Source: Isurus oxyrinchus
Taxonomy: Eukaryota
NCBI GenBank assembly: GCA_026770705.1
Contig: JANJGN010000071.1
Span: 558,001-622,000 of the forward strand
Length of the DNA stretch: 64,000 nt
Reading direction: 5' to 3'
Shown: one piece after another, positions 427 to 61,185 of the stretch
How the letters are laid out: every line of letters begins with the position of its first letter
Position numbering within the stretch: position 1 is the first letter of the stretch
Program-made: the position numbers and the translations under genes
The notes under the pieces: generated by a model
Told to the model about the DNA's origin: nothing
Databases searched by the model: none
Seen by the model: the letters and a program-made list of their open reading frames with translations, nothing else

Positions 427-566
427 TCAAACAGTCTGTCGACTTCCTTTCACTGTTTGTCTCTCCCAGACACAGACTCCAGCGATAGTGATAACCACAG
501 CCACAAGGAATATCACAGCTCGTATTCCCAGGATCAGGATCACATGCAGAATCTCTCCTCCACTGT
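427..566 (-). CDS. Siglec-like copy A: transmembrane and short cytoplasmic exon with intramembrane Arg
   Basis: Pyrimidine-rich ctctag acceptor, phase 1; reads xSGGEILHVILILGIRAVIFLVAVVITIAGVCVWERQTVKGSRQTV*; Arg codon 520-522; near-identical to 56939-57078. Confidence 0.85.
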
Positions 567-1684
567 CTAGAGAGCACACAGAAAGAAATCATCACTGACC
601 CTCTGCTTTCAATCTCTCACTCTGGCTGAACAATCAAGCTTCATATCACTGCAACATTTGCTGTAATATTGACCCATCCACTGGGATTCAATGTGGAATG
701 AATGTTTTCATTGTAAACACTCGAAGAGTGGACAATCGGAACTTTCCCCTTAGCGTGGAACATTGGTGAGAATGGATCATTGTGCTGTTGGACTCCCTGT
801 CCAATGTTTCTCTCCATCGCTGTGTACAGGATTGTGCTGTAGAAAATTCTGGAAACGTTTAGTGCAGGGTGGAAATCCATCTCGGACGTGTGTGCGAATC
901 GGGCAGGATCGAGATGGACTCCCCCACGGACTTACAACCCCCGCTTAATAAACAGTTCCAATCTTTACCCAGAGAGAGAGGAGAATGTGGAACTCGCTCC
1001 CACAGGGAGTGGTCGAGGTGAATAGTAGCAAATTAGGATGGGAAATTGCTTGAAAAGCTAGGAGATGCAAGGGTTAAGTGCTACCGTGCCACCACTGGTG
1101 GGAGAGTGTAACTACAGCGTGACGTTTACATAGGCAATCCCCATTATGAACTTGGACATTGGACATCATGTGCAAAATGGGCTCTGGAAAGGTGAGAACA
1201 TGATGTAAGCTTTTCACCAACAGAAATTCCTTCGTAAACCTCTCCATCTCTCTCTTACTGTCAGATACTCAAACAACATTTCACACAGAATTACATAAGG
1301 AGGAGTTGGGACAGGTGACTGGTCAAAGGGTTAGATTTCAGGAAGCTTTTTAAAGGAGGATAGAGAGTTAGAGAGGCAGAGAGTATCTGTGAGAATCTCT
1401 GTGCATCTGGGTGTCTAATAGACTTTGCAATTTCCGCATTCTTCCATAAACTTGAAAGGGAATACAACTCCCAGAATCCATGTCAACTCTCCGGTGCAGC
1501 ACTGAGGGAGGTCAGGTAACCCACGGGGGAGAATGTGTTAGTGTGTTTGTTTGTGAGTGTGTCCTTTTGTGTGCTCATACATGTGGGATTGTGTGTCTGC
1601 ACGTGTCTATTTAGGTTTGTATAATTGTCTGTGTTTGTGTAGTGTTTGAATCTGAGAGAGCTGTTGAAGTCTGTGTACACTCAC

Positions 1685-1835
1685 GTTCCACAGTGATGGT
1701 TATGAACCCCTCCACTGCTCCATGTTCATTCTCTGCCACACACTGATAGTCTCCAGTGTCCCTGGATGTAACGTGAGGAATCACCAACCACAGCTCATTG
1801 TTGGAACTTGTTCTGTTCATTGTGATATTCAGATG
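1685..1835 (-). pseudogene. Siglec-like copy A: 3' half of a third Ig (C2/I-set) exon
   Basis: HLNITMNRTSSNNELWLVIPHVTSRDTGDYQCVAENEHGAVEGFITITVE with DxGxYxC motif and gtgagt donor; in-frame TGA immediately upstream, no B-strand Cys or acceptor. Confidence 0.8.
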
Positions 1836-2160
1836 TCAGGGCAGGACTCAACATGACAGATCACAGGTTTACCAACAGGAAGTGAACAACAATTTATATT
1901 TAATGGGAAGAGAGTGCTGATTGATTGGCAAGTGGTCTCTGATTGGAGGCGGTGTTGCCATGGAAAATAATGTGTGCGAGCTGTAAAGTTTAGGCAGATT
2001 GTCTCTTCATTCAGCAATAATCAAATAAAGATCAGTTAACTTCTATCGACTGTGAAGCACTTTGAGAGGTCTGAGAATGTAGATACTGAGAACGGGCTGC
2101 ACTGTCAGAGGGTCAGCGCTGAGGGAGTGCTGATGTAGAATGAAAGGTGTCGGTACTTAC

Positions 2161-2457
2161 CTTACACAGTTAGTATGAGGGTCCGCTCCGATGAAACAGA
2201 TGGATATCTCACTCTGCAGCTGAGAGTGTGTCCGTGGTGTTGGAGTGATGGGATCAGGGTCAGAACAGAAGTATAGGTCAGAGTGACACCATGCTGAGTT
2301 ACAGTGTTTGAGACTGATCCAGGTACATCAGTGGCAGTGTCCCAGGTTAAGACAGGTGCTGCTGTTCCATTGCACGTTGTGTTGAAGGTGCAGCTTACAT
2401 CCATACGCTTTCCTGCAATAATTTCAGCAGGGAATATCATGGGTTTATCTGTGAAAT
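2161..2457 (-). CDS. Siglec-like copy A: C2-set domain-2 exon, last codon mutated to TAA
   Basis: 297-nt phase 1-1 exon, DFTDKPMIFP...SCTFNTTC...LTW...LSCRV...LTV*; three Cys as in Siglec domain 2; CAA in copies B and C is TAA here (2162-2164). Confidence 0.85.
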
Positions 2458-2744
2458 CTAACAGACAGAGAATGGATCCTTTTGGAGAAATATAACGTGA
2501 AACATCAGTTCAAATAGAAACCACAGTCCCACAAGAGAAAGCACTTTTACAAGGATGATATCAGAACTGAGAGATTACAACGATCAGGAGAGAATTTCCT
2601 ATTTTCAGACTTAGTGGATTTTCTGTCTCTCAGATGAATTCACTTCCAATTTGAGACAATTGAACTGACAATCCCAGGTGAGGGTGGGGGAGCAGCTCAC
2701 AGTTCCTGACACACTGGCTTGTTACTTTCTCTGAAATCTGCCAG

Positions 2745-2992
2745 ATTTAAATTCTATCCTGTTCCCAGCAGGAGAGAATCCATTTGAACCAATCACTGAA
2801 CCGGCATCTAAAACAGATGATCAGGTTATTGATCACATTGCTGTTTCTGGGAGCTTCCTGTGAATAAATTGGCTGCTGTGTGTCCCATATTACAACAAGG
2901 GCAACATTTCAAGAATTATTTCATTGGTTGTGAAACCATTTGCAACGTACAGAGGTGTTGAAAGGCGCTATAGAAATGCGAATCTTTCTTTT
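2745..2992 (+). mobile_element. SINE 3' fragment
   Basis: Ends in gaaaggcgctatagaaatgc-type tail that recurs at 39945-39965, 60917-60940 and in reverse at about 12700-12720. Confidence 0.55.
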
Positions 2993-3270
2993 GTCGATAT
3001 GGAAAACTGTCAAACAGGGTTAGGGAGATCGATGGGAGTGGATAACCTGATAACATTGATGGACACAGTCAATACTTTTAATCATTGATATTAAAATGAG
3101 TATTAGAGGTTGCTTTAGGACTGAACTGGAAGCTATCACCAGGTTATTGAGAATCAGACAGTGTGCTATAATAAGCTGTGTTTTGTGTTAATATGTAAAC
3201 GTCACAGTTTGCGTTATTTCCCATTGAGTGTTGAATGTGAATTGTTGAGTAATTATAACACAGCACTTAC

Positions 3271-3639
3271 CAGAAACGTGAAGCTGGGTTACAGGGTAAT
3301 AGTTATGGCTCGGACCATTGTCAAATTCTATCCTGAAAAAATAAGGTCCTGCATCTTCCCGTCTGATGTTGTTTATAATCAGGGAACAGTCGCCATCTTT
3401 CAGGTTTCCAGACAGCCAGGTCCGATGGTGGAACCGTGGTAACTCGTGACTGTGATCCTTGGAGTGAAAGGCAATGGGAGCCCAGGGAATCTGTTTCTCA
3501 TTATTAAACCAGAGTCCACCTCGCGGTTGGTTTTCCAGACACGATGGATAACTGTAATGACAAGGAATCTGTACACACGAACCTTCCTGCGCTGTCACCT
3601 CTCGTGGAGTGTCACCGTTCCACTCTTGTGAGGGTTCAA
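3271..3639 (-). CDS. Siglec-like copy A: second V-set exon (Arg retained)
   Basis: 369-nt phase 1-1 exon; Siglec hallmarks SCVQIPC, GDCSL, no F-strand Cys, YFFRIE; begins VEPS rather than VGLS and has an extra Cys (PSCLEN). Confidence 0.9.
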
Positions 3640-3694
3640 CTGGGGAGAGAAATCTCAATATTTAACTCTGGATGGTTTGTGGATCCACTAGACT

Positions 3695-4525
3695 CAAATT
3701 TACAGATGAGGCTGAATTGGGGGGATGGTCAATACTGAGGAGGACTACAACAAATTATTTTGGCAGGAAGAATAGAAAAACAGGATATTATTTAAATGGA
3801 GAGAGGCTGCTGAATGCAGTACAGAGGGATCTGGGTGTCCTTGTACATGAATCACAGAAAGTCAGCATTCAGGAACACCACGGAATGAGGAAGGCAAGTG
3901 GAACGTTGGCCTTTATTGCAAAGGGATGGAGTATAAAAGGAGGGAAGTCTTGCAACAGCTGCACAGGGTGAGATTATATCAGGAGCAGTGTGTACAGTTC
4001 TGGTCTCCTTACTTAGGGAGGGATAGACTCTGCATTGAAGGCAGTTCAGAGGAGGTTCACTGGGCTGATTCCTGGGATTAAAGGGTTTGTCCTGTGAGGA
4101 AATGTTGAGCAGGTTGGGCCTGTATCCATTGGAGTTTAGAAGAATGAGGGGTGACCTTATAGAAACATATCCGATTCCGAGGGGGCTTGACAGGGTGGAT
4201 GCTGGGAGGATGTTTCCCCCTCGTGGGGGAATCTAGAACCAGGGAGCACAGTTTCGGAATGAGGACTCTCCCATTTAAGACTGAGATGAGGAGGAATTTC
4301 CTCTCTCAGAGGGGCGCTAGCCTGTGGAATTCTCTTCCCCAGACAGCAGTGGAGGCTGGGCCATTGAATAGACTCAAGGCTGAGTGAGGCAGGTTTTTGA
4401 TCGACAAGGGAGTCAAGGGTTTGGGGAACAGGCAGGAAAATGGAGTTAAGGCCACAACCAGATCAGTAGAGCAGGCTGGAGGGGCCGAATGGCCTGCTCC
4501 TGTCCCTATTTCTTATGTTCCTACA
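3695..4525 (+). mobile_element. CR1-clade LINE 3' fragment, degenerate
   Basis: Frame-broken QRDLGVLVH...PLVGESRTR motifs and ggccgaatggcct tail, similar to 45600-46360. Confidence 0.85.
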
Positions 4526-4599
4526 TTCTTACCTTCTTAAAATATTAAAGCTGCAGAATAAACATGCAAGTGACTGACCCGCTCGACCCACCTTCCATC

Positions 4600-5522
4600 A
4601 GGGGCTGGAGGAGGTTACACAGATAGGGAGGTTTGTGGGGGCTGGAGGAGGTAACAGAGATAGGGAGGGCTGTAGATACTGGAGGAGGTTACGCAGATAG
4701 GGAGGGTGGTAGGACCTGGAGGAGGTTGCAGAGATAGGGAGGGCTATAGGGATTTGAGGAGTTTATGGAGATGGGGAGCGTGTAGGGACTGGAGGAGGCT
4801 GCAAGGGCAGAGAAGGTTTTAGGGGCAGGAGGAGTTTACAGGGATAGGAAGAGTTGTAGGGGCTGGACGGATTGCAGAGGTAGGGAGGGTTGGAAAGGCT
4901 GGTGGAGGTTCCAGAGGTAGGGAAGGTTGCAGGGACTGGAGGAGTTTACAGAGATGGGGGAGTTTTTGGGGCAGGATGGGGTTACAGAAATAGGGAGGTT
5001 TGTAGGGGCAGGACGAGGTTAGATAGATATGGAGTGTGGCTGGGGCTGAGGGAGGCTACAGAGATAGGGAGGGTTATAATGGCTGGAGGAGGTTACAGAG
5101 ATAAAGGAAACTCTTAGGGACTGGAGGAGGTTACAGAGATAGGGAGGGTTGTAGTGGGCTGGAGGAGGTTACAGAAATATAATGGGTTGTAAGAGATGGA
5201 CCAGCTTACAGAGATAGGGAGAGGTATTCGGTCTGGAGGAGGTTGCAGAGATAGGGGAGGTTGTTAGGACTGGAGGAGGCTACAAATATCGCGAGGGTTA
5301 TCGGGGCTTGAGGAGGTTAAAGAGATAGGGAGGGGTGTTGGGTCCAGAGGAGTTTGCAGTGATAGGAATGGTTTTTGGGATTGGAAGAGGGTACTGAGAT
5401 AGGAGGGTTGTAGGGACTGGAGGAGTCTCCTGAGATAGGGAGGGTTGTAGGGACTGGAGGAGGCTCCTGAGATAGGGAGGGTTGTAGGGACTGGAGGAGG
5501 CTCCTGAGATAGGGAATGTTGC
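4600..5522. repeat. G-rich minisatellite, unit about 37 bp
   Basis: Repeats of gagatagggagggttgtagggactggaggaggttaca; abuts the L2 fragment. Confidence 0.85.
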
Positions 5523-5524
5523 CG

Positions 5525-6535
5525 TGGATGAAAATAAAGGAGGAGATTACTGTAATAGGGAGGAACAATATTCAAAAATTTGGACATTGAGACTTTGCTT
5601 GACCAGGAGCCAGTCTCGGTCATCGAGCAGAGCGGATGATAAGGGAACGGGACTAGGTGTGAGTAAGGACGTGGTCAGCAGTTTTGGATGGCCTCAAGTT
5701 TATGGAGTGTAGAGCGTGTGTTGGAACAGTCGAGTCTGGAGGTAATGAAGGCGTGGATGACGGTTTCAGCAGCAGATGAGCTGAGACAGGGTGATGTCAT
5801 GCGATGTTACGGAGGTGGAAATAGACGGTGTTAGTGAGGGCGCAAAATGGAGGCCGGAAGCTCATCTCAGGATCAAATGGGACAACAAAGCTGTGAACAG
5901 ATTGGCTTCAATCTCAGAGAGCTGCCAGGGAGAGGAATGGAGTTGGTAGCGAGGGAACAGAGTTTGGAGTGGGGAATGAAGACAATGGCTTCAGTCTTTC
6001 CAATATTTAATTGGAGGGAATTTCTGCCCATCCAGTACTGGATGTCGGATAAGCAGCCTGATAATTTAGCAGCAGTGGAGGAGTCGAGAGAGGTGGTGGT
6101 GAGGTAGAGCTGGGGATCCTCAGTGGACAGGTGAAAACTAACACTGTTCAGATGATGCTGCAAAGCCATTGCAAGTGATTCTCTGGCTACGATGAGATGG
6201 ATAAGAATGGAGCCAGGGGAGAGCAGTCCCACCCAGCTGGACGACAGTGGAGAGGTGTTGGAGGAGGATGGTGTGGTCGAGCGTGTCAAAGGCTGCAGAC
6301 AGATCGAGAAGGACGAGGAGGGAAAGTTGACCTTTGTCACAGTCACACAGGATGCCATTTGTGACCTTGATAAGAGCTGTTTCAGCACAGTGGCTGGGGT
6401 GGGAACCTGATTGGAGGGATTCAAACATGGAGTTCCGGGAAAGATGGGAACGGATTCGGGAGATGGAAACACGTTCAAGGACTTTGGAGGGGAAAGAGAG
6501 GCTGGAGATGGGACGGGAGATTACACAGGCAGTGT
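5525..6535 (-). mobile_element. L2-clade LINE reverse transcriptase fragment
   Basis: ETALIKVTNGIL, LLVLLDLSAAFDTLDHTILLQHL and LQLNIGKTEAIVF motifs split by frameshift and deletion. Confidence 0.85.
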
Positions 6536-6792
6536 GAGGGGTGGAAGGTGTAGTGAGGAGGAGATACTTCACTCAGGTGGGAGGTGTCATCACCCCTCAG
6601 CTCGGTTTACGTTACAGCTATGATGTGGATTCAATCAGACACAATAAGCTCATGGATCTGGGAGCAGAAATAGACAAATCATTAAAAATAGTGACGCTGG
6701 TTAACACGGCCAAAAAACAAGCAAATCAAACACTATTATTTCCCATTGAGTGTTGGATGTGAATTGTTGAGTAATTATAACACAGCACTTAC

Positions 6793-7170
6793 CAGAAACG
6801 TGAAGCTGGGTTTCAGGGTAATAGTTATGGCTCGGACGATTGCCAAATTTTATCGTGAAAAAATAAGGTCCTGCATCTTCCCATCTGATGTTGTTTATAA
6901 TCAGGGAACAGTCGCCATCTTTCAGGTCTCCAGACAGCCGGGTCCGATGGTGGAACTGTGATAACTCGCGACTGTGACCCTTGGAGTGAAAGGCTATAGA
7001 CCATTTAGACCATTTGTTCCGTATGTATCTTCTCATTTTCCAGATTCCGACCTGTGGTTTCTTTACCAAATCTGATGGATAACTGTAATGACATGGAATC
7101 TGTACACACGAACCTTCCTGCGCTGTCACCTCTCGTGGAGTGTCACCTTTCCACTCTTGTGACAATCCAA
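6793..7170 (-). CDS. Siglec-like copy A: first V-set exon lacking the essential Arg
   Basis: 378-nt phase 1-1 open exon; YFFTIK in place of YFFRIE (AGG to ACG at 6854-6856); divergent C-C' region. Confidence 0.9.
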
Positions 7171-11055: not shown

Positions 11056-12451
11056 CAAGTCTGTCAGACTCCTTGCATTAAAATTAATACAATCCAACTT
11101 TGCCACGCTATCTTGAGCCTTAAATGGCCAATAATTTCTATGCCTTCCAGGTTCATTTGCTCTCTTCTAATTTTGGCTGTGCATCTCTCTCTGTTGAACC
11201 TCCTCTCGGGATCCCATCCCCTGCCATATTAGTTTAAAGCCTCCTCAATTGCATCAAGGGTGTAATGTCAATTGAAACCAGGGACAACATCAAAGAATGA
11301 CAATCCCACAGATCAATGTGAGCAATTAAAGAAACCTCCAGACAATTTTGCCACCACAAGATCTCGACATAACAGCAGATTACCTCTACGCTTTAGAGAC
11401 TCAAATATTCAACAGATCTATACACTTATGTAATTGTCAAGAAATATGAAAATGATACCAGGAACCTCTTGTTCCCTGTCGTTCTCAAAGATCCATCCCT
11501 GCAGCAGGAGCCTGAAGAGTTACTGATGTGGGGCTTAATTTATCAGATTGTAGAATGATCCGGAACAGAAGGATGCCATTTGGCCCATCGAGCCTGTGCT
11601 GGGCCTTTGAAAGATCTGTCCAATTAGTCCCACTCTCACCTCTGCTCTCTCCTCCACAGCCCTGCAAAATGTCCCCTTCAAGTATTTATCCAGTTCCCCT
11701 TCTGAAAGTTCCTGTTGAATCTGCTTCCACCGGCCTTTCAGGCAGTGAGTCAATGGTCTCTCTCTGAGCTGCAAAGTGCTAATGTTCTGAGAACTTTAAA
11801 CTCTGCAGCAGATCAGAGACAATCATGATAACTCAGAATATTTGACAGTTTTACACACAGACAGCTTTGCCTCCCTTCTCTCTTTCAGTTATCTTGCTCC
11901 CTTATTGAAGTATCTAGCAAGGTGAGAATGGACAGGAAGTGTGACACTGAACAGCCTGTCTATTCTAGGAGCTGCTGTGTTGTCTTTATGGGAAATTCTG
12001 ACAAAATCAGCAAAAGACACAAAATTTCAGGGCCTTGTTATCCGAGTCCCAGCATCAGGATAGACCTCATCCCCCAGTTGGTGTTCCTGATTCTCTATTC
12101 AGCCGATCGCTCCCTTGTCACTGGCTGACCTACACTGACTCCTAGTCCAGCAATGACTCGAATTTCAAATTCTCATCATCGATTTCTTACCCCACCATCC
12201 CCCCTCTACACTCCCAATCCCTGTAACCTCCTCCAACCCTAAAACCCTTTGAGATCTCTGCTCTCCTCCAATTCTGCTGTCAGACAGGGAGTCAGTGTAT
12301 ATCAGTGAGCACAGGGGTGATGGGTGAATGGGACTTGGTGTGAGTTTGTACACTGCCTCACTGCTGAATCAGTTCCCAATCACACTCAATAAGAATGATC
12401 TTTTACAAAGACTATTAGCCATAAACCTGTCCGAGCTGACGATGTTATTAC

Positions 12452-12491
12452 CTTGGAGAAGTGACAGGAGGAAGTAGGATTTCCCGTTCAT
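12452..12491 (-). CDS. Siglec-like copy A: leader exon coding part (exon about 12452-12531)
   Basis: MNGKSYFLLSLLQ plus phase-1 gtaata donor; joins the V exon to give signal peptide MNGKSYFLLSLLQVGLS-QEW. Confidence 0.85.
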
Positions 12492-12941
12492 AGTCCACTC
12501 CCAGATATTTCATAAGCTTCTGACTCTCAAACTGTGAAAGAGAAAGGAGTTAATGAGACCTCACCTCTTGTCCGACAGCTCTCAAGAGATCAGAACTGTT
12601 TTTGGACAACGTCTTGACAGACTAATTTGATTCTCTGTGGGATGATAGGTGCTCTGCAGAGAGTTACAAGGCTTTAAGAAAGAAAAACATTGAAGGATTT
12701 GCATTTCTATAGCACCTTTCACCACCTCAAGACATCCCAAAGCTCATGTCTCTGCAATTCCCTCATCCCTTGAGCTAGAAAGATGTTCCGTACAACAGAC
12801 TTGAGTCTCACACCCAGATCTCAATAACCAGTAGAAATCTTTCAAAGGCATGAATCATTGGAATCTGTCTTTATAAAGTCACAACATCAACAAAGGACGG
12901 TGTTGGTGGTGGAAGTGAATTCCAATCGTTCCGTTACTTAC

Positions 12942-13030
12942 CCAGGACCTGTCTGACTGCTCGCCTGGGGAGGAACTGCCCACACGCTCTGCTTGGGCTG
13001 AATGACCTCTTCCTGTGCTGCTCCCTCTGT
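12942..13030 (-). other. Siglec-like copy A: putative non-coding exon 1 (5' end approximate)
   Basis: Perfect G/gtaagt donor conserved in five copies, about 410 bp upstream of the leader acceptor in four of them. Confidence 0.6.
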
Positions 13031-13068
13031 GTGTTTAATGAGAAAGGGTTGATGTGTCACTGTGAGAC

Positions 13069-13082
13069 AAAATGAGGAAGTT
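13069..13082 (+). promoter_or_regulatory. PU.1/Spi-type ETS site upstream of exon 1
   Basis: AAAATGAGGAAGTT; identical in copy D (60557-60570, reverse), variant AAAATGTGGAAGTG in copies B and C. Confidence 0.4.
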
Positions 13083-13319
13083 GGATCAAAGTGACAGAAC
13101 AGGTCGTGTTTTGAGTTTTTTGAAGCTGTGAACCCTTTGTGTTCTGGACTTGTGATGATATTTCTGCTCAAAAGTGGAAAGTCATTGACCAGGAATTTCT
13201 CCTGTGTGTCACTGGATTTCGAACCCTCTCTCTCTCTCTGAGTGAGAAGGTCGTCAGTTCGAAATTCATTTGGCAAAATTCAGGCTGGCAAACCAGACCG
13301 GCACTCGGTGTCAGGACTG

Positions 13320-13625
13320 AGAGTCCTGCACAGTCGGAGAGTCAGTACTGAGGGAGTGTTGCACTGTTGGACGGTCAGCACTGACTTAGTGCTGCACTGT
13401 CGGAGGGTCTGTACTGCGAGTGTTGCACTCTGGGTGTGCCAGTGCTGAAGGAGTGCTGCACTGTCAGATGGTCAATGCTGAGGGAGCGCTACACTTTTCA
13501 AGCATCAGTACTTAGGGGCTGCTGCACTATCAGGGGGTCATGACTAAGGGACCACTGCACAGTCGGAGGGTCCGTACCCAGGGAATGCTGCACTGTCGCA
13601 GGCTCAGTACCGAGGGAGTGCAAAC
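13320..13625 (-). repeat. Degenerate 33-bp satellite units upstream of copy A
   Basis: gtactgagggagtgctgcactgtc variants, reverse orientation matching the gene. Confidence 0.8.
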
Positions 13626-17117: not shown

Positions 17118-17234
17118 AAGAAAGATGAGAAGGATCTGGAAATGAAATCTAACCGCGGAGTCAATCCTGATACAGATGATGATCTTTACGCAAACTGTGA
17201 ATTTGCTGAGGATTCTGTTTATGGGAATTTATAA
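17118..17234 (+). pseudogene. Orphan terminal cytoplasmic exon with tyrosine motifs (ITIM-type)
   Basis: Acceptor ttctgtttctattacag, then KKDEKDLEMKSNRGVNPDTDDDLYANCEFAEDSVYGNL*; SVYGNL fits S/I/V/L-x-Y-x-x-L/V/I; possible ATTAAA at 17750; no upstream partner exons on this strand in the window. Confidence 0.7.
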
Positions 17235-43064: not shown

Positions 43065-43325
43065 CACCCCCTGACAGTGCAGCACTCCCTCAGTACTGAC
43101 CCTATGACAGTGCAGCACTCCCTCAGTACTGACCCTATGACAATGCAACACTCCCTCAGTACTGACCCTCTGACAGTCAGCACTCCCTCAGTACTGACCC
43201 TCCGACAGTGCAGCACTCCCTCAGTACTGACCCTCTGACAGTGCAGCACTCCCTCAGTCCTGACCCACTGACAGTGCAACACTCCCTCAGTAATGACCCT
43301 TTGACAGTGCTGCTCTCCCTCAGTA
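43065..43325. repeat. 33-bp satellite short array
   Basis: About 8 units. Confidence 0.9.
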
Positions 43326-46380: not shown

Positions 46381-49300
46381 CACCCTCCGACAGTGCAGAT
46401 CTCCCTAATTACTGACCCTCCAACAGTGCAGCACTCCCTCAGTACTGACCCTCTGGCAGTGCAGCATTCCCTAAGTATTGACCCTCCAACAGTGCAGCAC
46501 TCCCTCAGTACTGACCCTCCAACAGTGCAGAGCTCCCTAATTACTGACCCTCCGACAGTGCAGCACTCCCTCAGTACTGACCCTCCGACAGTGCAGCATT
46601 CCCTAAGTACTGACCCTCCGAGAGTGCAGCACTCTTCCAGTACTGGCCCTCCAACAGTGCAACACTCCCCTAGTACTGACCCTCCAACAGTGCAGCACTC
46701 CCTCAGTACTGACCCTCCAACAGTGCAGCACTCCCTCAGTACTGACCCTCTGACAGTGCACCACTCCATCAGTACTGACCCTCCGACAGTGCAGCACTCC
46801 CTCAGTACTGATCTTCCAACAGTGCAGCAGTCCATCAGTACTGACCCTCCGACAGTGCACCACTCCCTGAGTCCTGATCCTCCAACAGTGCAGCACTCCC
46901 TCAGTACTGATCCTCCAACAGTTCAGCACTCCCTCAGTACTGATTCTCTGACAGTGAAGTACTTGCTCAGTACTGACTATGCGGCAGTGCAGCTTTCACA
47001 GTACCTGCCCTCCAACAGTGCAGCAGGTCATCAGTACTCACGCGCCAAGAGGGCAGCTCTCCCTCAGTACTGACCCTCCCACAGTGCAGCACTACCTCAG
47101 TACTGACCCTCCAACAGTGCAGCACACCATCAGTACTGACCCTCCAACAATACAGCACTCCCTCAGTACTGAACTGAAGTGTCTGCCTGAATTAAGTGCT
47201 TTGTGGTGAAGGAACCTACATTGATATCACACGTTTCACATTCTCAGGGTCCCTCTTCAGTACTGACCCTCTGACAGTGCAGCATTGCTTCAGTACTGAC
47301 TCTCTTACAGTGCAGCACTCCCTCAGTACTGACCCTCTGACAGTGCAGCACTCCCTCAGTACTGATCCTCCGACAGTGCAGCATTCCCTAAGTACTGACC
47401 CTCCGAGAGTGCAGCACTCTTCCAGTACTGGCCCTCCAACAGTGCAACACTCCCCTAGTACTGACCCTCCAACAGTGCAGCACTCCCTCAGTACTGACCC
47501 TCCAACAGTGCAGCACTCCCTCAGTACTGACCCTCTGACAGTGCACCACTCCATCAGTACTGACCCTCCGACAGTGCAGCACTCCCTCAGTACTGATCTT
47601 CCAACAGTGCAGCAGTCCATCAGTACTGACCCTCCGACAGTGCACCACTCCCTCAGTCCTGATCCTCCAACAGTGCAGCACACCCTCAGTACTGATCCTC
47701 CAACAGTTCAGCACTCCCTCAGTACTGATTCTCTGACAGTGAAGTACTTGCTAAGTACTGACTATGCGGCAGTGCAGCTTTCACAGTACCTGCCCTCCAA
47801 CAGTGCAGCAGGTCATCAGTACTCACGCGCCAAGAGGGCAGCTCTCCCTCAGTACTGACCCTCCCACAGTGCAGCACTACCTCAGTACTGACCCTCCAAC
47901 AGTGCAGCACTCCATCAGTACTGACCCTCCAACAATACAGCACTCCCTCAGTACTGAACTGAAGTGTCTGCCTGAATTAAGTGCTTTGTGGTGAAGGAAC
48001 CTACATTGATATCACACCTTTCACATTCTCAGGGTCCCTCTTCAGTACTGACCCTCTGACAGTGCAGCATTGCTTCAGTACTGACTCTCTTACAGTGCAG
48101 CACTCCCTCAGTACTGACCCTCTGACAGTGCAGCACTCCCTCAATACTGACCCTCTGACAGTGCAGCATTGCTTCAGTACTGACCCTCTGACAGTGCAGC
48201 ACTCCCTCAGTACTGACCCTCTGACAGTGCAGCATTGCTTCAGTACTGACCCTCTGACAGTGCAGCACTCCCTCAGTACTGACCCTCTGACAGTGCAGCA
48301 CTCCCTCAGTACTGACCCTCTGACAGTGCAGCACTCCCTCAGTACTGACCCTCTGACAGTGCAGCACTCCCTCAGTACTGACCCTCTGACAGTGCAGCAC
48401 TCCCTCAATACTGACCCTCTGACAGTGCAGCACTCCCTCAGTACTGACCCTCTGACAGTGCAGCACTCCCTCAGGACTGACCCTCTGACAGTGCAGCACT
48501 CCCTCAGTACTGACCCTCTGACAGTGCAGCACTCCCTCAATACTGACCCTCTGACAGTGCAGCACTCCCTCAGTACTGACCCTCTGACAGTGCAGCACCC
48601 CCTCAGTAATGACCCTCTGACAGTGCAGCACTCCCTCAGTACTGACCCTCTGACAGTGCAGCACTCCCTCAGTACTGACCCTCTGACAGTGCAGCACTCC
48701 CTCAGTACTGACCCTCTGACAGTGCAGCACTCCCTCAGTACTGACCCTCTGACAGTGCAGCACTCCCTCAATACTGACCCTCTGACAGTGCAGCACTCCC
48801 TCAGTACTGACCCTCTGACAGTGCAGCACTCCCTCAGTACTGACCCTCTGACAGTGCAGCACTCCCTCAGTACTGACCCTCTGACAGTGCAGCACTCCCT
48901 CAGTACTGACCCTCTGACAGTGCAGCACTCCCTCAGTACTGACCCTCTGACAGTGCAGCACTCCCTCAGTACTGACCCTCTGACAGTGCAGCACTCCCTC
49001 AGTTCTGACCCTCTGACAGTGCAGCACTCCCTCAGTACTGACCCTCTGACAGTGCAGCACTCCCTCAGTACTGACCCTCTGACAGTGCAGCACTCCCTCA
49101 GTACTGACCCTCTGACAGTGCAGCACTCCCTCAATACTGACCCTCTGACAGTGCAGCACTACCTCAGTACTGACCCTCTGACAGTGCAGCACTCCCTCAG
49201 TACTGACCCTCTGACAGTGCAGCACTCCCTCAGTACTGACCCTCTGACAGTGCAGCACTCCCTCAGTACTGACCCTCTGACAGTGCAGCACTCCCTCAGT

Positions 49301-49500
49301 ACTGACCCTCTGACAGTGCAGCACTCCCTCAGTACTGACCCTCTGACAGTGCAGCACTCCCTCAGTACTGACCCTCTGACAGTGCAGCACTCCCTCAGTA
49401 CTGACCCTCTGACAGTGCAGCACTCCCTCAGTACTGACCCTCTGACACTGCAGCACTCCCTCAGTACTGACCCTCTGACAGTGCAGCACCTCTTCAGTAC
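46381..49500. repeat. 33-bp satellite array containing a 785-bp tandem duplication
   Basis: Divergent units followed by homogeneous units; non-repeat spacer at 47171-47255 repeated at 47956-48040. Confidence 0.95.
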
Positions 49501-50509
49501 AGGGTCCTGAATCTTTGGAAGTCTCTCCTTAATCCTTGGGTGTGGAGGATCTCAGAGACTCTCATGTAATTGAGAAGTCACCATGAGCACAGCAGCAGTC
49601 AGAATAGACAGATCTACAACCCAACACTCACACTTGCTGCACAGTTTCACCACCAAACCACAAGAATTAAGCAAACTGGCTGAAAATAAAGAGATGACAA
49701 TTCAGCCTGTGTGGAAAGGTCAGAAGTTTATTGTTTCCTGTTTGTCTCTGATCTGCAGCGCAGATAAATATTAGAAAACCACAGAATCAAACAGCACAGA
49801 AAGAGGCCACTCTGCCCATTGTCCCTGTCCTGGTCTCCTGGGACAGATATCCAATTGGTCCCAATCTCCCATTCTCTCACACTCTGCAAGTATTTTGAAA
49901 GATCCTATTGAATCTGCTTCCACCGCCCTTTCAGGCAGCACCTTCCAGATCACAGCAACTCGCTGTGTACAATAAAACCTAACCTGCCTGCTCAGTGATG
50001 GTTACTCCCATCTGAGGGGATTTATATTCATGAATTTGGATTCAATCTGGAACAGGAAGAATTTGAAGGACGATGGGGGAAGAGAGGTGGATTGAAACCT
50101 ATTGTGTGCTTCCTTTAAAGAGCTAGCACAGCCAAGATGGCATGAATGGCCTCCTGCTGTTCCGTGTGATTCTGTGATATGATGAAGAAAGTTCCTTTTC
50201 AGCAACAGTTTACCTCTTCTGCTGAAACTCTTCATGTTGGAGAAGAGGAAGTGATGGTTTCCATCAGCGTTTAGTGTGTGTTGCAGTTCAGTTTTAACCG
50301 AAACTCAGTGAAGCGGATGGTGAAGGTCATGAACCCACCACAGCGGCACCTCCAACACATGCAGAGCTCAGGCTAGAGGCGCTATGTTAGCCTGTTTCAC
50401 AGGGTCTGCTGGAGTAGGGTCAGTGCTGAGCTTGGGGACAAGTCAGTCTACAATGCTGCATCGGAATCAACAATACAACAATATGGGGTTTGAATCAGAA
50501 ATAATTTGA

Positions 50510-50870
50510 TCCTCTGACAGTGCAGCACTCCCTCAGTACTGATTCTCCAACAGTGCAGCACTCCCTCAGTACTGACCCTCTGACAGTGCAGCACTCCCTC
50601 AATACTGACCCTCTGGCAGTGCAGCACTCCCACAATACTGAGCTTCTGACAGTGCAGCACTGCTTCAGTACTGAAGCTCTGGCAGTGCAGCACTCCCACA
50701 ATACTGAGCCTCTGACAGTGCAGCACTGCTTCAGTACTGACCCTCTGGCAGTGCAGCACTCCCACAATACTGAGCCTATGACAGTGCAGCACTGCTTCAG
50801 TACTGACCCTCCAACAGTGCAGCACGCCCTCAGGAATGACCCTCTGACAGTGCAGGACTCTCAGTCCTGA
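50510..50870. repeat. 33-bp satellite array upstream of copy C
   Basis: About 11 variant units, paralog of 38960-39352. Confidence 0.9.
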
Positions 50871-51149
50871 CACCGATTGCCGGTCTGGTTTGTCAGTCTG
50901 AATTTTGCCAAATGAATCTCGAACAGACGACCTTCTCACTCAGAGAGCGAGAGAGGGTTTGAAACCCAATGACCCACAGGAGAAATTCCTGGTCAATGAC
51001 TTTCCACTTTTGAGCAGAAATATCATCACAAGTCCAGAACGCAAAGGGTTAACAGCTTCAAAAAACTCTAAACATGAGCTGCTTTCTCACGAAGTGACCA
51101 CTTCCACATTTTGTCTCACAGAGACACATCAACCCTTTCTAATTAAACA

Positions 51150-51239
51150 CACAGAGGGAGCAGCACAGGAAGAGGTCATTCAGCCCAAGCAGAGTGTGTG
51201 GGCAGTTCCTCCCCAGGCGAGCAGTCGGACAGGTCCTGG
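51150..51239 (+). other. Siglec-like copy C: putative non-coding exon 1 (5' end approximate)
   Basis: G/gtaagt donor at 51239/51240. Confidence 0.6.
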
Positions 51240-51689
51240 GTAAGTAACGGAACGATTGGAATTCACTTCCACCACCAACACCGTCCTTTGTTGATGTTGT
51301 GACTTTATAAATACAGATTCCAATGATTGATGCCTTTGAAAGATTTCTATTGATTATTGAGATCTGGGTGTGAGGCTCAAGTCTGTTGTACAGAACATCT
51401 TTCTAGCTCAAGGGATGAGGGAAGTGCGGAGACATGAGATTTGGGATATCCTAAGATGGTGAAAGTTTCTATAGAAATGCAAGTTCATCATTGTTTTTCT
51501 TCCTTAAAGCCTTGTGACTCTCTGCAGAGCACCTATCATCCCACAGAGAATCAAATTAGTCTGTCAAGACATTGTCTAAAAGCAGTTCTGATCTCTCGAG
51601 AGCTGTCGGACAAGAGGTGAGGTCTCATTAACTCCTTTCTCTTTCAGAGTTTGAGAGTGAGAATCTGATGAAATATCTGGGAGTGGACA

Positions 51690-51729
51690 ATGATCGGGAA
51701 ATCTTACTTCCTCCTGTCACTTCTCCAAG
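51690..51729 (+). CDS. Siglec-like copy C: leader exon coding part (exon 51648-51729)
   Basis: MIGKSYFLLSLLQ, phase-1 donor. Confidence 0.85.
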
Positions 51730-53265
51730 GTAATATCATCGTCAGCTCAAACAGATTTATGGCTAATAGTCTTTGTAAAAGATCATTCTTATTGAGCTCT
51801 GATTGGGAACTGATTCAGCAGTGAGCCAGTGTACAAACTCACACCAAGTCCCATTCACCCATCACCCCTGTGCTCACTGATATACACTGACTCCCTGTCT
51901 GACAGCAGAATTGGAGGAGAGCAGAGATCTCAGAGGGGTGAAGGGGCTGGATGAGGTTACAGAGGTAGGGACTGGAGAGGGGGTTGGGGGGATTGGGAAT
52001 TGAGCATGAGAATCTTAAAATGGAGGCACTGCTTGACTGGGAGCCTATGTAAGTCAGTGTGGATGGGGGGAAGGGTGGTAAAAGGTTGAGTAGAAAATCA
52101 GGGATAAAAACTGGAGGATGAAGTCTCTCCCTATGTTAGGTGTCTGATAGCAATATCCTGAAATGTGTCTTTTGCTGATTTTATTCAGAATTTCCCATGA
52201 AGACAACACAGCAGCTCCTAGAATAGACAGGCTGTTCAGTGTCACACTTCCTGTCCATTCTCACCTTGCTAGATACTTCAATAAGGGAGCAAGATAACTG
52301 AAAGAGAGAAGGAAGGTAAAGCTGTCTGTGTGTAAAGGTGTCAATATTCAGTTTGTATATTTGTCTTTCTCTCGACACATGCAGAGCTCAGGCTAGAGGC
52401 ACTTTGTTAGTGTGTTTCACAGTGTCTGCTGGAGTAGGGTCAGTGCTGAGCTTGGGGACAAGTCAGTCTACAATGCTGCATCGGAATCAACAATACAACA
52501 ATATGGGGTTTGGATCAGAAATAATCCATTAGACAATGAGGATCCAAAGAGATTCCTTAAACAATGAGGATCCAAAGAGATTCCTTAAACAATGAGGATC
52601 CAACGAGATTCCTCAGTCAATGAAGGTCCAAAGTGCACCAATCAGATTGAATCAGATTAACCAATCAGCTGTGTTGAGGAGCAGACAGGAATGTTAGGCT
52701 AATTAGTGATTCATGACGGTGATAATGGGGGGAGTTCTGAGGGCTCCTAATCCATTGTCCTGTCTTGTAAATCAGCACTGAATGGATCTCAGTTGGTGTG
52801 TCTTGTAGACACTGTGTTGGGTCACATTTAATCATTGACATTAAAGTGATAATTAGAGGCTGCATTTGGACTGAACATGAAGCTGTCACCAGGCTGCTTG
52901 AAATTAAGAATCCAAATGGTCCAGATGAGCATAGAACAATAGATTATATTTACATAGTGCCTTAACTGTAAAAAAAAAACAATCCATGGGACTACACAGG
53001 AGCATTATAATACAAGGCACAGTGACACTGTCTCACTGGCTTCACTAAACAGGGTCCTGAGGACCATGAGCCAATGTAGAATGAACTTGTCCACTCCTGT
53101 GTCCAGGATTCTCTTCCATCCATTGTGAAACCTTGGGGAGTTCCTTGTGTGTCCTGTAGATGGTCCACACTGCAGCCAATGTGCCCCAGTGATGGAGGGA
53201 GTGGATATCGAGTCTAGTGGATCTACAAACCATCCAGTGTTAAATATTGATATTTCTCTCCCCAG

Positions 53266-53634
53266 TTGGACTGTCACAAGTGTGGAAAGGTGACAGTCCC
53301 CGAGAGGTGACAGCGCAGGAAGGTTCGTGTGTACAGATTCCATGTCATTACAGTTATCCATCACATTTGGAAAACCAACCGCGAGGTGGAGTCTGGTTTA
53401 ATAATGAGAATCAGATTCCCTGGGCTCCCATTGCCTTTCACTCCAAGGATCACAGTCACGAGTTATCACGGTTCCGCCATCGGACCCGGCTGTCTGGAGA
53501 CCTGAAAGATGGCGACTGTTCCCTGATTATAAACAACATCAGACGGGAAGATGCAGGACCTTATTTTTTCAGAATAGAATTTGACAATGGTCCGAGCCAT
53601 AACTATTACCCTGTAACCCAGCTTCACGTTTCTG
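53266..53634 (+). CDS. Siglec-like copy C: V-set exon (Arg retained)
   Basis: 369 nt open, YFFRIE, six amino-acid differences from copy B. Confidence 0.9.
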
Positions 53635-54492
53635 GTAAGTGCTGTGTTATAATTACTCAACAATTCACATTCAACACTCAATGGGAAATAACACAAACTG
53701 TGATGTTTACATATTAACACAAAACACAGCTTATTATAACACACTGTCTGATTCTCAATAACCTGGTGATAGCTTCCAGTTCAGTCCGAAAGCAACCTCT
53801 AATACTCACTTTAATATCAATGATGAAAAGCATTAACTGTATTATCAGGTTACCACTCCCATCAATCTCTCCTGTCCTGTTTAAAAGTCTGACGTATCGA
53901 TAAAAGAAAGATGTGCATTTCTGCTGCGCAATTTACCACCTCAGGAGGATCCAAATCCCTTCACAGCCAATGAAATTATTCCTGAATTGTAGTCACAGAT
54001 GTAAAACACAGCAGGCAGTTTGTGCACAGCAAGATCCAACAAACCACAAGGTGATAAATCACCCAGATCACTGAGGAAATGAGAAGCCAGTGAACTCAAA
54101 CCTCTGGTCTGATGAAGAGTCATACGGACTCGAAACGTTAACTCTGTCTTCCTCTCCACTGATACTGTCAGACCTGCTGAGTCTTTCCAGCAATTTTTGT
54201 TTTTGTTTCAGATTTCCAGCATCCGCAGTATTCTGCTTTTAACTCCAATCTCTGGTCTGAGCCTCTTCTCTCATCCAGTGTTCTCAATTCACATGTCTCG
54301 GAGTGAACGTGTATTAAGCTGAGAGACAGAAACACTACTGCCAAAGAGCAAGAAAATCTTTCCTGATCATTGTAACCTCTCAGTTCTGATATCATCCTTG
54401 TAAAAGTGCTTTCTCTTGTGGGACTGTGATTTCTATTTGAACTGATGCTTCACGTTATATTTCTCTAAAAGGATCCATTCTCTGTCTGTTAG

Positions 54493-54789
54493 ATTTCACA
54501 GATAAACCCACGATATTCCCTGCTGAAATTATTGCAGGAAAGCGTGTGGATGTAAGCTGCACCTTCAACACAACGTGCAATGGAACAGCAGCACCTGTCT
54601 TAACCTAGGACACTCCCACTGACGTACCTGGATCAGTCTCAAACACTGTAACTCAGCATGGTGTCACTCTGATCTATACTTCTGTTCTGACCCTGATCCC
54701 ATCACTCAAACACCACGGACACACACTCAGCTGCAGAGTGAGATATCCATCTGTTTCATCGGAGCGGACCCTCGTACTAACTGTGCAAG
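54493..54789 (+). pseudogene. Siglec-like copy C: C2-set exon with premature stop
   Basis: Core Trp codon TGG is TAG at 54606-54608; otherwise colinear with 42552-42848. Confidence 0.88.
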
Positions 54790-55114
54790 GTAATTACATG
54801 CACCATTCATTCTACATCAGCACTCCCTCAGCGCAGACCCTCTGACAGTGCAGCCCGTTCTCAGTGTCCACATTCTCATGCCTCTCAAAGTGCTTCACAG
54901 TCGATAGAAGTTAATTGATCTTTATTTGATTATTGCTGAATGAAGAGACAAGCTGTCTAAACTTTACATCTCGCACACACCATTCTCCATGGCAACACCT
55001 CCACCTATCAGAGACCACTTGCCAACCAATCAGCACTCTCTTCCCATTAAGTATAAATTGTTGTTCACTTTCTGTTGGTAATCCTGTGAACGGGCTTCTT
55101 GATTCCTGCCATGA

Positions 55115-55265
55115 CATCTGAATGTCCAAATGAACAGAACAAGTTCCAACAATGAGCTATGGTTGGTGATTCCTCATGTTACATCCAGGGACACTGGAGA
55201 CTATCAGTGTGTGGCAGAGAATGAACATGGAGCACTGGATGAGTTCATAACCATCACTGTGGAAC
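55115..55265 (+). pseudogene. Siglec-like copy C: 3' half of third Ig exon
   Basis: HLNVQMNRTSS...DTGDYQCVAENEHG...ITVE with gtgagt donor; same truncation point and upstream TGA as copy A. Confidence 0.8.
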
Positions 55266-56938: not shown

Positions 56939-57078
56939 ACAGTGGAGGAGAGATTCTGCACGTGATCCTGATCCTGGGAATACGAGCTGTGATATTCCTT
57001 GTGGCTGTGGTTATCACTATCTCTGGAGTCTGTGTCTGGGAGAGACAAACAGTGAAAGGAAGTCGACAGACTGTTTAA
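56939..57078 (+). CDS. Siglec-like copy C: transmembrane and short cytoplasmic exon with intramembrane Arg
   Basis: ttctctag acceptor, phase 1; xSGGEILHVILILGIRAVIFLVAVVITISGVCVWERQTVKGSRQTV*; Arg codon 56983-56985. Confidence 0.85.
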
Positions 57079-58419: not shown

Positions 58420-60335
58420 ACTGACAGTGCAGTATTTCCTCAGTGCTGACCCTCCGTCAGTGCAGCGCTCTCTCATTACTGTCCCTCTGACAGTGCTGCA
58501 CTACCTCATTATTGACCCTTTTCAAGTGCTTCACCCCGTCATCATTGACATTCTGACCGTGCAGGATTCCCTCATGGCTGACAATCTGACAGTGCAACAC
58601 TCCCTGAATACTGACCCTCTGATACTGTACCCCTCCATCACTAATGACTTTCCAACAGTTCAGCACTCCCTCGGTACAGACCCTCTGACAGGGCAGCATT
58701 CCCTCAGTATTCAAACTCCCACTATGCAGCTGTCCCTCAGGATTCTCCCCCCCACAGTGCAGCACTCCCTCAGTACTCACCCTCCCACAGTGCAGCACTC
58801 CATCAGTACTCACCCTCCCAAAGTGCAGCACTCCCTCAGTACTCACCCTCCCACAGTGTAGCCCTCCCTTAGTACTAACCCTCCCAAAGTGCAGCACTCC
58901 CTCAGTACTCACCCTCCCACAGTGCAGCACATCCTCAGTACTCACCCTTCCACAGTGCAGCACTCCATCAGTACTCACCCTCCCACAGTGCAGCACATCC
59001 TCAGTACTCACCCTTCCACAGTGCAGCACTCCATCAGTACTCACCCTCCCAAAGTGCAGCACTCCCTCAGTACTCACCCTCCCACACTGTAGCCCTCCCT
59101 TAGTACTAACCCTCCCAAAGTGCAGCACTCCCTCACTACTCACCCTCCCACAGTGCAGCACTCCCTCAGTACTCACCCTGCCACAGTGCAGCACTCCCTC
59201 AGTACTCACCCTCCCACAGTGCAGCACTCCCTCAGTACTCACCCTCCCACAGTGCAGCACATCCTCAGTACTCACCCTCCCACAGTGCAGCACTCCCTCA
59301 GTACTCACCCTCCCACAGTGCAGCACTCCCTCAGTACTCACCCTCCCACAGTGCAGCACTCCCTCAGTGCTCACCCTCCCACAGTGCTGTGCGAATTGTT
59401 TAAATCAAGACTGGTGTCCAAAGAGGGAGGTTTCAATGCTAAATCATTGAAATCGGTGAAAATTATTTTTAGGCTGAGGGGAACAAGACTTAGTTCCTCA
59501 AATCCTTTCTTTAGCAATAACACACAGTACTAGAATCTCTGTTTAAATAAATTCCAGTTAAACTTTGCCATGAAAGGATATCTTCTCACACTCCGCTCTA
59601 CCACAGTACTAACTCTCCCACAGTCCGGCATCCCCTCAATACTGACCCTCCGACTGTGCAAATCTCACTCAGTACAGACCCACCGACAGTGCAGCACTCC
59701 CTCATTACTGATCCTCGGACAGTGCAGCACTCCCTCATTAAGGACCCTCTTCCAGTGCAACACTCCCACATTACTGTCCCTCTGACAGTGCAGCACTCCC
59801 ACATTACTGACCCTCTGAAAGTGCAGCACTCCCACATTCTGTCCCTCTGACAGTGCAGCACTCCCTCAGTACTGACCCTCCGACATTGCAGCATTCCTTC
59901 ACTACCTGCCCTCTGACAGTGCAGCACTCCCACGTTACTGACCCTCTGATAGTGCAGCAGACCCTCAATACTGACCCCACTAACAGTGCAGCACTCGCTC
60001 AGTACTGACCCTCCCACAGTGCAGCACTCCCTCAGTACTATACTCCTGACAGTGAAGCACTCCCTTATTAATGACCCTCTTCCAGTGCAGCACTCCCACA
60101 TTACTGACCCTCTGACAGTGCAGCACTCCCACATTACTGTCCCTCTGACAGTGCAGCACTCCCTCAGTACTGACCCTCCAACATTGCAGCAATCCTTCAC
60201 TACTGGACCTCTGACAGTGCAGCAATCCCACATTACTGACCTTCTGATAGTGCAGCACTCACTCAGTACTGACCCTCACACAGTGCAGCACTCCCTCAGT
60301 ACTATACCCCTGACAGTGCAGCACTCCTTCAGTAA
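58420..60335. repeat. 33-bp satellite arrays upstream of copy D (two blocks, gap about 59390-59600)
   Basis: First block includes a locally homogenised variant cccacagtgcagcactccctcagtactcaccct; second block degenerate. Confidence 0.9.
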
Positions 60336-60607
60336 TGATATCAGGGATTGTCAACATGTATCATACGGCCAGAGACCTGTATTGGGAAGTCTATCGCCTG
60401 CACTTCAGCCTCTGAGGTGAGGGGGAGGGGTCTAATCCCACGGAGCCAATGGAGAAGCTTCATGACTACAGCTGCCCAAATATGAGCTGACAGATCATCG
60501 CATGGTAAACATTTTGCTGAGAGCACAAAACATCCTCGATCTTCTCACTGATTACCAACTTCCTCATTTTGTCTCACAGAGACACATCAACCCTTTCTCA
60601 TTAAATA

Positions 60608-60697
60608 CACAGAGGGAGCAGCACAGGATGAGGTCATTCAGCCCAAGCAGAGCGTGTGGGCAGTTCCTCCCCAGGCGAGCAGTCGGACAGGTCCTGG
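60608..60697 (+). other. Siglec-like copy D: putative non-coding exon 1 (5' end approximate)
   Basis: G/gtaagt donor at 60697/60698. Confidence 0.6.
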
Positions 60698-61145
60698 GTA
60701 AGTAACGGAACGATTGGAATTCACTTCCACCACCAACACTGTCCTTTTTGATGTTGTGACTTTATGAAGACAGATTCCAATGATTGATGCCTTTGAAAGA
60801 TTTCTACTGATTATTGAGATCTTGGTGTGAGGCTCAAGTCTGTTGTACAGAACATCTTTCTAGCTCAAGGGATGAGGGAAGTGCAGAGACATGAGTTTGG
60901 GACATCCTGAGGTGGTGAAAGGTGCTATGGAAATGCAAGTCTTTCATTGTTTTTCTTTCTTAAAGCCTTGTAACTCTCTGCAGAGCAACTATCATCCCAC
61001 AGAGAATCAAACTATTCTGTGAAGACATTGTCTCAAAGCAGATCTGATCTCTCAAGAGATGTCGGACAAGAGATGAGGTCTCATTAACTCCTTTCTCTTT
61101 CAGAACTTCAGAGTTAGAAGCTAAGGAAATACCTGGGAGTGGACA

Positions 61146-61185
61146 ATGATCGGGAAATCTTACTTCCTCCTGTCACTTCTCCAAG
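61146..61185 (+). CDS. Siglec-like copy D: leader exon coding part (exon 61104-61185); remaining exons, if any, beyond window
   Basis: MIGKSYFLLSLLQ, phase-1 donor. Confidence 0.85.

Follow-up and report, generated by a model that had tools for sequence, protein, structure and literature searches.

A probable birth-and-death segment of an elasmobranch-specific Siglec family in Isurus oxyrinchus

The 64,000-nucleotide stretch of Isurus oxyrinchus DNA analysed here (GenBank assembly GCA_026770705.1, contig JANJGN010000071.1, positions 558,001 to 622,000; the whole stretch is referred to as the window, and numbered from its first letter) contains exons for V-set and C2-set domains of the Siglec type. 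It is probably a birth-and-death segment of a large elasmobranch-specific Siglec family, with its gene units disabled and no functional receptor pair remaining. The original prediction, made from the sequence letters, had been a cluster of paired activating and inhibitory Siglec-like receptors. In the reading favoured here, the window is laid out as inverted segmental duplications around a ~18.5-kb array of a 33-bp satellite and holds about three activating-type gene units, and the inhibitory side would survive only as relics, comprising five penultimate cytoplasmic exons and one terminal Tyr exon that appear unusable here. The left-arm gene (minus strand) would consist of a leader, a first V domain that has lost its key Arg (V1, exon B), a second V domain (V2, exon A), a C2 domain, a dead third immunoglobulin (Ig) domain, and a terminal exon with an Arg in its membrane span and a 13-residue Tyr-free tail. 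Copy D would be organised in the same way except for having only one V, copy C appears to be cut off past its C2 exon, and the window as a whole would record the turnover of a paired family.

The window is less informative than an intact receptor pair and shows the decay side of the shark Siglec family, including nonsense and frameshift lesions, loss of the outer-V Arg as in human Siglec-12, orphaned inhibitory exons, and satellite-flanked inverted duplications. Its use lies in dating and modelling the turnover of genes, and not in questions of function.

Gene units and their lesions

Exons were found by stop-free reading of both strands, together with tblastn of 164 homologous proteins against the 64-kb window. 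Splice sites were read directly from the window letters, and homology searches were run exon by exon, without a joined spliced model. The inventory comprises 4 V exons, 3 C2 exons, 2 degenerate third-Ig exons, 2 Arg-bearing transmembrane (TM) exons, 4 leader exons, 5 short cytoplasmic exons and 1 Tyr-motif exon (Table 1), and tblastn with the 164 proteins found no further Siglec-like exons in the window. The two Arg-bearing TM exons with Tyr-free tails, each ending in its own stop, and the separate Tyr-motif tail exon are present as originally described. The four gene copies with a three-Cys domain 2 fared less well: the three-Cys C2 exon is present in copies A, C and D, but the four V exons look like about three gene units, with B and A as V1 and V2 of a single left-arm gene. 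This two-headed gene, beginning with the leader at 12491, is proposed because B groups with the V1 of a Cetorhinus homologue (P0002), and A with its V2. P0002 contains a B-type V1, which has an unusual MRRY..W..W loop in common with B and keeps the Arg, followed by an A-type V2. In a tree of family V domains (see below), B lies beside the P0002 V1, while A, C and D lie beside the P0002 V2 and a Carcharodon CD33-like protein. The loss of Arg in B appears to be recent, because the Cetorhinus V1 still contains it.

In this assembly, each unit carries a defect. In copy A, the TAA at the end of the C2 exon, one base before the donor, replaces a Gln codon conserved in C, D and all homologues, and in copy D a TAG replaces the Trp of LTWD. 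The third Ig exons of A and D have both lost ~20 nt (the SNLTWR stretch), so that ...VES.P is followed directly by HLN and the frame runs into a TGA, and the first half of these exons is degenerate too. In V exon B the key Arg is missing. The leader, V and C2 exons of copy C are open, and the homology of this copy to copy D ends at the C2 donor, beyond which there is satellite and long interspersed nuclear element (LINE) sequence; no TM exon was found for this copy. Counts of synonymous and non-synonymous differences among A, C and D involve too few differences to tell constraint from neutrality.

The left-arm gene was compared over the stretch 400-6399 with Logan contigs from four runs (at least 95% alike, two organisms), for which the label 'RNA' is a guess. 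The contigs cover exons far more deeply than introns, and several splice joints with GT..AG borders on the minus strand are present. The donor of V exon A (3271) is joined to the C2 acceptor (2457) in three runs. The C2 donor (2161) is joined to the TM acceptor (566) in run X2, skipping the dead third Ig exon, and run X4 links the third Ig donor (1685) to the same acceptor. At 3631-3638, loose ends and a back-joint read ...HVS|A/V..., corresponding to a V exon spliced onto V exon A. The X4 contig is regarded as A-like: over 264 positions that include 21 differences between A and D, it shows 3 mismatches to A. Compared with the window, it is missing a base at 537, within TM exon A, which would be either a frameshift in the Arg anchor of that animal or a contig error.

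These joints raise the alternative that the left-arm gene is functional. If the TAA is an allele or an error, it would encode a two-headed activating Siglec (V1-V2-C2-Arg anchor, with the third Ig skipped), and if the TAA is real, a secreted V1-V2-C2 decoy. The splice sites are good, and reading frames stay open in the leader, both V exons, the TM exon, and the C2 exon as far as its final codon. The joint in X2 that skips the third Ig exon is in frame (G|AC, encoding Asp), exactly as in a Scyliorhinus torazame homologue (P0083), the A-like contig in X4 shows that a third Ig exon is joined to the anchor, and the Cetorhinus protein has the same V1+V2 head. Premature stops more than about 50 nt before the last exon junction generally trigger nonsense-mediated decay. 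The TAA lies 1-3 nt before that junction, and such a transcript would probably escape. Against this, the TAA is present in the assembly, V1 lacks the key Arg, the A-like X4 transcript contains the frameshifted third Ig exon and is one base short at 537, and the reads over the C2 exon are not assignable to copy A. On balance, a functional left-arm gene is unlikely.

The alternative of a working activating/inhibitory pair within the window, in which the Tyr exon at 17118 would supply the tail for an ectodomain copy, is highly improbable. This exon does have a strong acceptor in phase 0, matching the donor of the cytoplasmic exons, and its SVYGNL fits the pattern of an immunoreceptor tyrosine-based inhibitory motif (ITIM); homologous tails are joined to the same ectodomain family in other species. 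However, it lies on the plus strand at 17.1 kb, upstream of all the plus-strand Siglec exons (from 19.2 kb, counting the cytoplasmic exons), and the only gene upstream is the left-arm gene on the opposite strand; thus no gene in the window can splice to it. A tblastn search of the window with five tail queries, at a cutoff as permissive as E=5, found neither an uncharged TM exon nor an ITIM/TEY tail exon beyond the Arg-bearing TM exons, and no tail exon combining an ITIM with a membrane-distal TEYxxI/V motif is present in the window. An inhibitory partner with a near-identical ectodomain is represented in the window only by the relic exons (five cytoplasmic, one Tyr), and every Arg-anchored copy carries a stop or a frameshift. 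Within the window, the originally predicted paired cluster is therefore not borne out as a working pair.

For the decayed segment that we prefer, the arrangement of the relics suggests an origin. Each leader is preceded, ~0.43 kb upstream, by a relic cytoplasmic exon and the 33-bp satellite, suggesting that the duplicated unit was cut from an array in which the 3' end of an inhibitory gene lay upstream. The lack of a Tyr exon in those units is left unexplained by this model. Several points weigh against the decayed-segment reading as a whole. Where A differs from C and D (four sites in the C2 exon, and 2484 in the intron), all covering runs carry the C/D letter, suggesting that the C2 contigs derive from another allele, species or paralogue and not from this A allele. 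The contigs are not assignable to a copy or species at C2, and may or may not carry the TAA. Both stops, the TAA and the TAG, could be confined to the sequenced haplotype, or could be assembly errors. Finally, sialic-acid binding and adaptor pairing by the family are predictions.

Siglec identity and the elasmobranch family

Judged by sequence comparison, the V and C2 exons are of the Siglec type. All four V exons match Pfam V-set and Ig_CD22 above cutoffs, and the C2 exons match C2-set_2. In a search of all PDB sequences with V exon C as the query, the 18 best matches are all Siglecs (Siglec-5, -7, -8, -10, MAG, CD33, sialoadhesin and Siglec-15; E 8.6e-16 to 2.2e-8), headed by a full-domain match to Siglec-5 (E=8.6e-16), and the first non-Siglec in the list is pIgR (1.5e-7, ~40 residues). 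In the alignment to Siglec-5, CVQIPC corresponds to CVLVPC, DCSLII to NCSLSI, and YFFRIE to YFFRVE. All four V exons contain the CxxxPC pair and the E-strand Cys (GDCSLII), and lack an F-strand Cys, with YFF in place of YxC. The predicted Siglec V-set hallmarks thus hold for all four V exons as regards the Cys pattern, but only A, C and D have the F-strand Arg (YFFRIE), which aligns with that of Siglec-5. These features are widespread among 283 V domains of the family, in which the two columns of the B-E Cys pair (assigned from sequence) are Cys in 281 and 262, the extra V-domain Cys (the first of SCVQIPC) is present in 227, and the F-strand Arg position is Arg in 204. The C2 exons contain three Cys (CTFNTTC...C) and show a weak match to domain 2 of MAG and CD33 (E ~1e-5).

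There is next to no chance that another V-set immune receptor family (CD300, pIgR-like, PILR or TIM-like) resembles Siglecs here by coincidence: pIgR, JAML, TIM and PILR are in the PDB list, with E values no better than 1e-7 and matches that mostly span ~40 residues, and the top match of the C2 exon is nectin-4, but Siglecs take the top 18 places over the whole domain (of the order of 1e-16 to 2e-8), the B-E Cys pattern, extra Cys, Arg and three-Cys C2 are all present, and Ig_CD22 is above its cutoff. No grouping of the V domains with a non-Siglec family was found, and their best PDB matches and homologues are of the Siglec type.

A search with V exon C against 1.84 billion representative proteins returned 1422 homologues, including 32 below 1e-30 and reaching E=2e-163 against shark Siglec models. 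The best homologues are NCBI-predicted shark and ray proteins named Siglec-8, -10, -11, -12, -13, -14, CD33-like or MAG-like, from Scyliorhinus, Cetorhinus, Mustelus, Carcharodon, Chiloscyllium, Stegostoma, Hemiscyllium, Pristis, Hypanus and Mobula. Many of the shark and ray homologues contain two to four V domains. Among the NCBI-predicted proteins, XP_072325011.1 (S. torazame, V-C2-Arg anchor), XP_041037180.1 and XP_041037177.1 (Carcharodon), and XP_078389734.1 (Cetorhinus) have the same exon modules and splice phases as the window, and are 80-92% identical to it over V and C2, and 75-85% over the Arg anchor. By contrast with the window copies, which contain stops or a frameshift, or lack an anchor, these are open gene models.

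The relatives also reveal the signalling ends that accompany this ectodomain. The Arg-bearing TM exon coincides with the C-terminal end of P0083 (S. torazame, V-C2-anchor), P0006 (S. torazame) and P0022 (Chiloscyllium), with 75-85% identity and an invariant LILGIRA; several shark orders share the Arg anchor as a conserved C-terminal module. The tail of Carcharodon P0014 is matched jointly by the cytoplasmic and Tyr exons, and the latter has further counterparts at the ends of P0007, P0062 and P0042. The joining of the Tyr-motif exon to this ectodomain family is thus borne out elsewhere, in predicted Siglec-family proteins of Carcharodon, Chiloscyllium, Mobula and Hypanus that end in this exon. 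YxN, the motif of its tyrosines, is a Grb2-type motif. Tails with LLYANx and TEYAQI are present in Carcharodon, Cetorhinus and other relatives, for example in Carcharodon P0153, which is 88% (V) and 92% (C2) identical to copy D and has an uncharged TM followed by an LLYAN/TEYAQI tail. Going by these gene models, the family as a whole combines this type of ectodomain with three or more kinds of signalling end.

Siglec-14 and Siglec-16 signal through a membrane Arg and an ITAM (immunoreceptor tyrosine-based activation motif) adaptor. By analogy with Siglec-14, -15, -16 and other paired receptors, an intact Arg-anchored member would be expected to bind sialylated glycans through its Arg-bearing V domain and to pair its membrane Arg with an acidic residue of an adaptor of the DAP12 or FcR-gamma type, and the ITIM/TEY- or YxN-tailed members would recruit SH2 phosphatases or adaptors. 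For the family as a whole, sialic-acid binding and adaptor pairing are predicted from such parallels.

The relationship to mammalian Siglecs was studied with a FastTree phylogeny of the 283 V domains, which were taken from the homologues and include no named CD22, Siglec-1 or Siglec-15 references. It contains an elasmobranch-only V clade of 59 tips (support 0.92), whose sister is a poorly resolved clade (0.39-0.60) comprising a Marmota Siglec-12-like protein, a shark MAG-like protein (P0130), and proteins of teleosts and lungfish; the CD22-like proteins from turtle and paddlefish branch at a greater distance. The elasmobranch-only clade makes an independent, lineage-specific expansion more likely than orthology to mammalian CD33-related Siglecs. 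Of the 'analogous or ancient' paired system that had been proposed, the analogous expansion therefore fits better, and the ancient CD33-related orthologue less well. A wider scenario is possible but doubtful: elasmobranchs may have independently built a megabase-scale Siglec family at a hepcidin-linked (MAG/CD22-type) locus, with multi-V heads and three interchangeable ends (ITIM+TEY, YxN and Arg anchor), in which case the window would preserve an activating-from-inhibitory origin, with the 33-bp satellite as the recombination substrate. In mammals, HAMP, USF2 and MAG are found in one neighbourhood (PMC4453067).

Comparison with known Siglec systems

The closest parallels are the human pairs Siglec-14/Siglec-5 and Siglec-16/Siglec-11. 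As in these pairs, the window copies have a Siglec V-set and C2 ectodomain, the activating form has a membrane Arg and a short Tyr-free tail, and shark relatives with a nearly identical ectodomain carry ITIM and TEYxxI-type tails (Carcharodon P0153). The window also resembles the mammalian CD33-related cluster in being shaped by duplication, inversion and pseudogenes. It differs from the human pairs in that its V domains fall in an elasmobranch-only clade, the shark Arg anchor is encoded by a terminal exon of its own that includes a stop, and the window contains neither an intact inhibitory partner nor an intact activating gene.

The left-arm gene also recalls Siglec-12, which has two V-sets and in its human form lacks the essential Arg, in that it apparently contains tandem V domains, with an outer V (B) lacking the Arg. 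V>V splicing is present in the RNA-like contigs, and a two-V model exists in Cetorhinus (P0002). By contrast, Siglec-12 is inhibitory, while the tail of the left-arm gene is an Arg anchor, and no direct B>A splice was observed over the contig-covered stretch 400-6399, which does not reach exon B. MAG (Siglec-4) and CD22 (Siglec-2) are a further comparison, in that some ray relatives bear the NCBI name 'MAG-like'. However, the PDB match to CD22 is weak (E=4e-5), MAG matches no better than Siglec-5, -7 and -8, the shark MAG-like protein P0130 lies outside the family clade, and the tails of the family are of the CD33-related, YxN or Arg-anchor kind.

No papers on shark Siglecs were found in the literature search, many elasmobranch proteins of the Siglec family have already been predicted by automatic annotation, and a study of teleosts reports CD33-related, ITIM-bearing Siglecs to be absent from fish genomes (PMC7226832). 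Arg-anchored shark Siglecs, conserved across orders and spliced in RNA, would place the on/off receptor design in the earliest-branching jawed vertebrates, and this design probably arose independently in sharks.

Window layout, repeats and minor observations

Table 1. Siglec-type exons and satellite arrays of the window, in window positions.
Feature	Position	Strand	Remarks
Terminal TM exon A	427-566	-	Arg in span (LILGIRAVIF); 13-residue Tyr-free tail; own stop 427-429
Degenerate third Ig exon A	1685-1970	-	~20-nt deletion, frameshift to TGA; 5' boundary uncertain
C2-set exon A	2161-2457	-	Three Cys; TAA 2162-2164 in place of conserved terminal Gln codon
V-set exon A, probably V2 of left-arm gene	3271-3639	-	Intact, Arg kept
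V-set exon B, probably V1 of left-arm gene	6793-7170	-	Frame open; F-strand Arg to Thr (YFFTIK)
Leader exon, left-arm gene	12452-12491	-	Starts MNGKSYF; donor G|GTAAT, phase 1; same as N-terminus of P0002, P0005, P0008
Relic cytoplasmic exon, copy 1/5	12942-13026	-	Starts SSTGRGHSAQ; ~0.43 kb upstream of leader
Orphan terminal Tyr-motif exon	17118-17234	+	Two YxN tyrosines (LYANC; SVYGNL); stop
Relic cytoplasmic exon, copy 2/5	19226-19316	+	Embedded between satellite arrays
33-bp satellite, main array	19406-37950	none	~562 units, 93% matches, ~18.5 kb, between inverted arms
Shorter arrays of the 33-bp satellite unit	38956-39353, 43060-43325, 46382-49500, 50507-50871, 58423-60334		
Relic cytoplasmic exon, copy 3/5	39631-39721	+	Upstream of copy C leader
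Leader exon, copy C	40173-40212	+	Starts MIGKSYF
V-set exon C	41325-41693	+	Intact, Arg kept
C2-set exon C	42552-42848	+	Intact; no TM exon after it
Relic cytoplasmic exon, copy 4/5	51155-51239	+	Upstream of copy D leader
Leader exon, copy D	51690-51729	+	
V-set exon D	53266-53634	+	Intact, Arg kept
C2-set exon D	54493-54789	+	TAG 54606-54608 in place of Trp
Degenerate third Ig exon D	54990-55265	+	Same frameshifting deletion as A; 5' boundary uncertain
Terminal TM exon D	56939-57078	+	Arg in span; Tyr-free tail; own stop
Relic cytoplasmic exon, copy 5/5	60607-60697	+	In-frame stop
Orphan leader exon (copy E)	61146-61185	+	ATG 61146, donor 61185; no V exon after it within the window

The window is repeat-rich vertebrate DNA, and self-comparison delineates its duplicated segments. 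Positions 1-3697 are a reverse match to 57412-53210, and 11063-13621 are a reverse match to 62578-60555 and 52349-50558, while 40612-42880 are a direct match to 52551-54821 (97%). An array of the 33-bp satellite is present directly upstream of each relic cytoplasmic exon. This satellite is open in several frames, and floods lists of open reading frames with spurious long entries. Other tandem repeats include a 43-bp unit at 18313-19096 (18 copies, 87% matches), and a 37-bp unit at 4600-5515, between V exons B and A (25 copies, 71% matches).

The C2 exon ends in T in copy C (42848), and in G in copies D (54789) and A (2161). Across the family, a final T gives a Tyr or Ser junction codon before a third Ig exon or an uncharged TM exon, and a final G gives an Asp or Gly codon before the Arg anchor or the other TM exon, and the base may mark the downstream exon formerly used by a copy. 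An interpretation of the T in copy C as a weakened donor was rejected, as it fits members with Tyr or Ser as the next codon (P0005, P0014). Each leader also has an upstream, out-of-frame ATG (40154-40210, 51668-51727, 61127-61183 and, on the minus strand, 12454-12513), which encodes MKYLGVDNDREILLPPVTSP, identical to the first 20 residues of a Carcharodon 'CD33-like isoform X2' (P0013). This isoform looks like an annotation artefact, because it lacks a signal peptide and half of the V domain.

A frame of 112-113 amino acids, overlapping the relic cytoplasmic exon in another reading frame, is found at 12941-13279 (minus strand), 39384-39722 and 50902-51240 (both plus strand), with partial copies at 60552-60698 and 18748-19320. 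It is open in at least three copies, has no match in Pfam, and could be a chance frame or part of a mobile element. Retroelement fragments are present at 13942-16201, 43492-46280 and 62400-64000 on the plus strand, and at 6138-6572 on the minus strand, the last with an RVT_1 match, and there is a weak aspartyl-protease match at 14453-14824. LINE-like open reading frames are present downstream of copy C and of the orphan leader at 61146. The Mobula model P0062 probably includes transposon sequence, because two stretches in the retroelement regions, 44791-44907 and 63759-63935, match its N-terminus.

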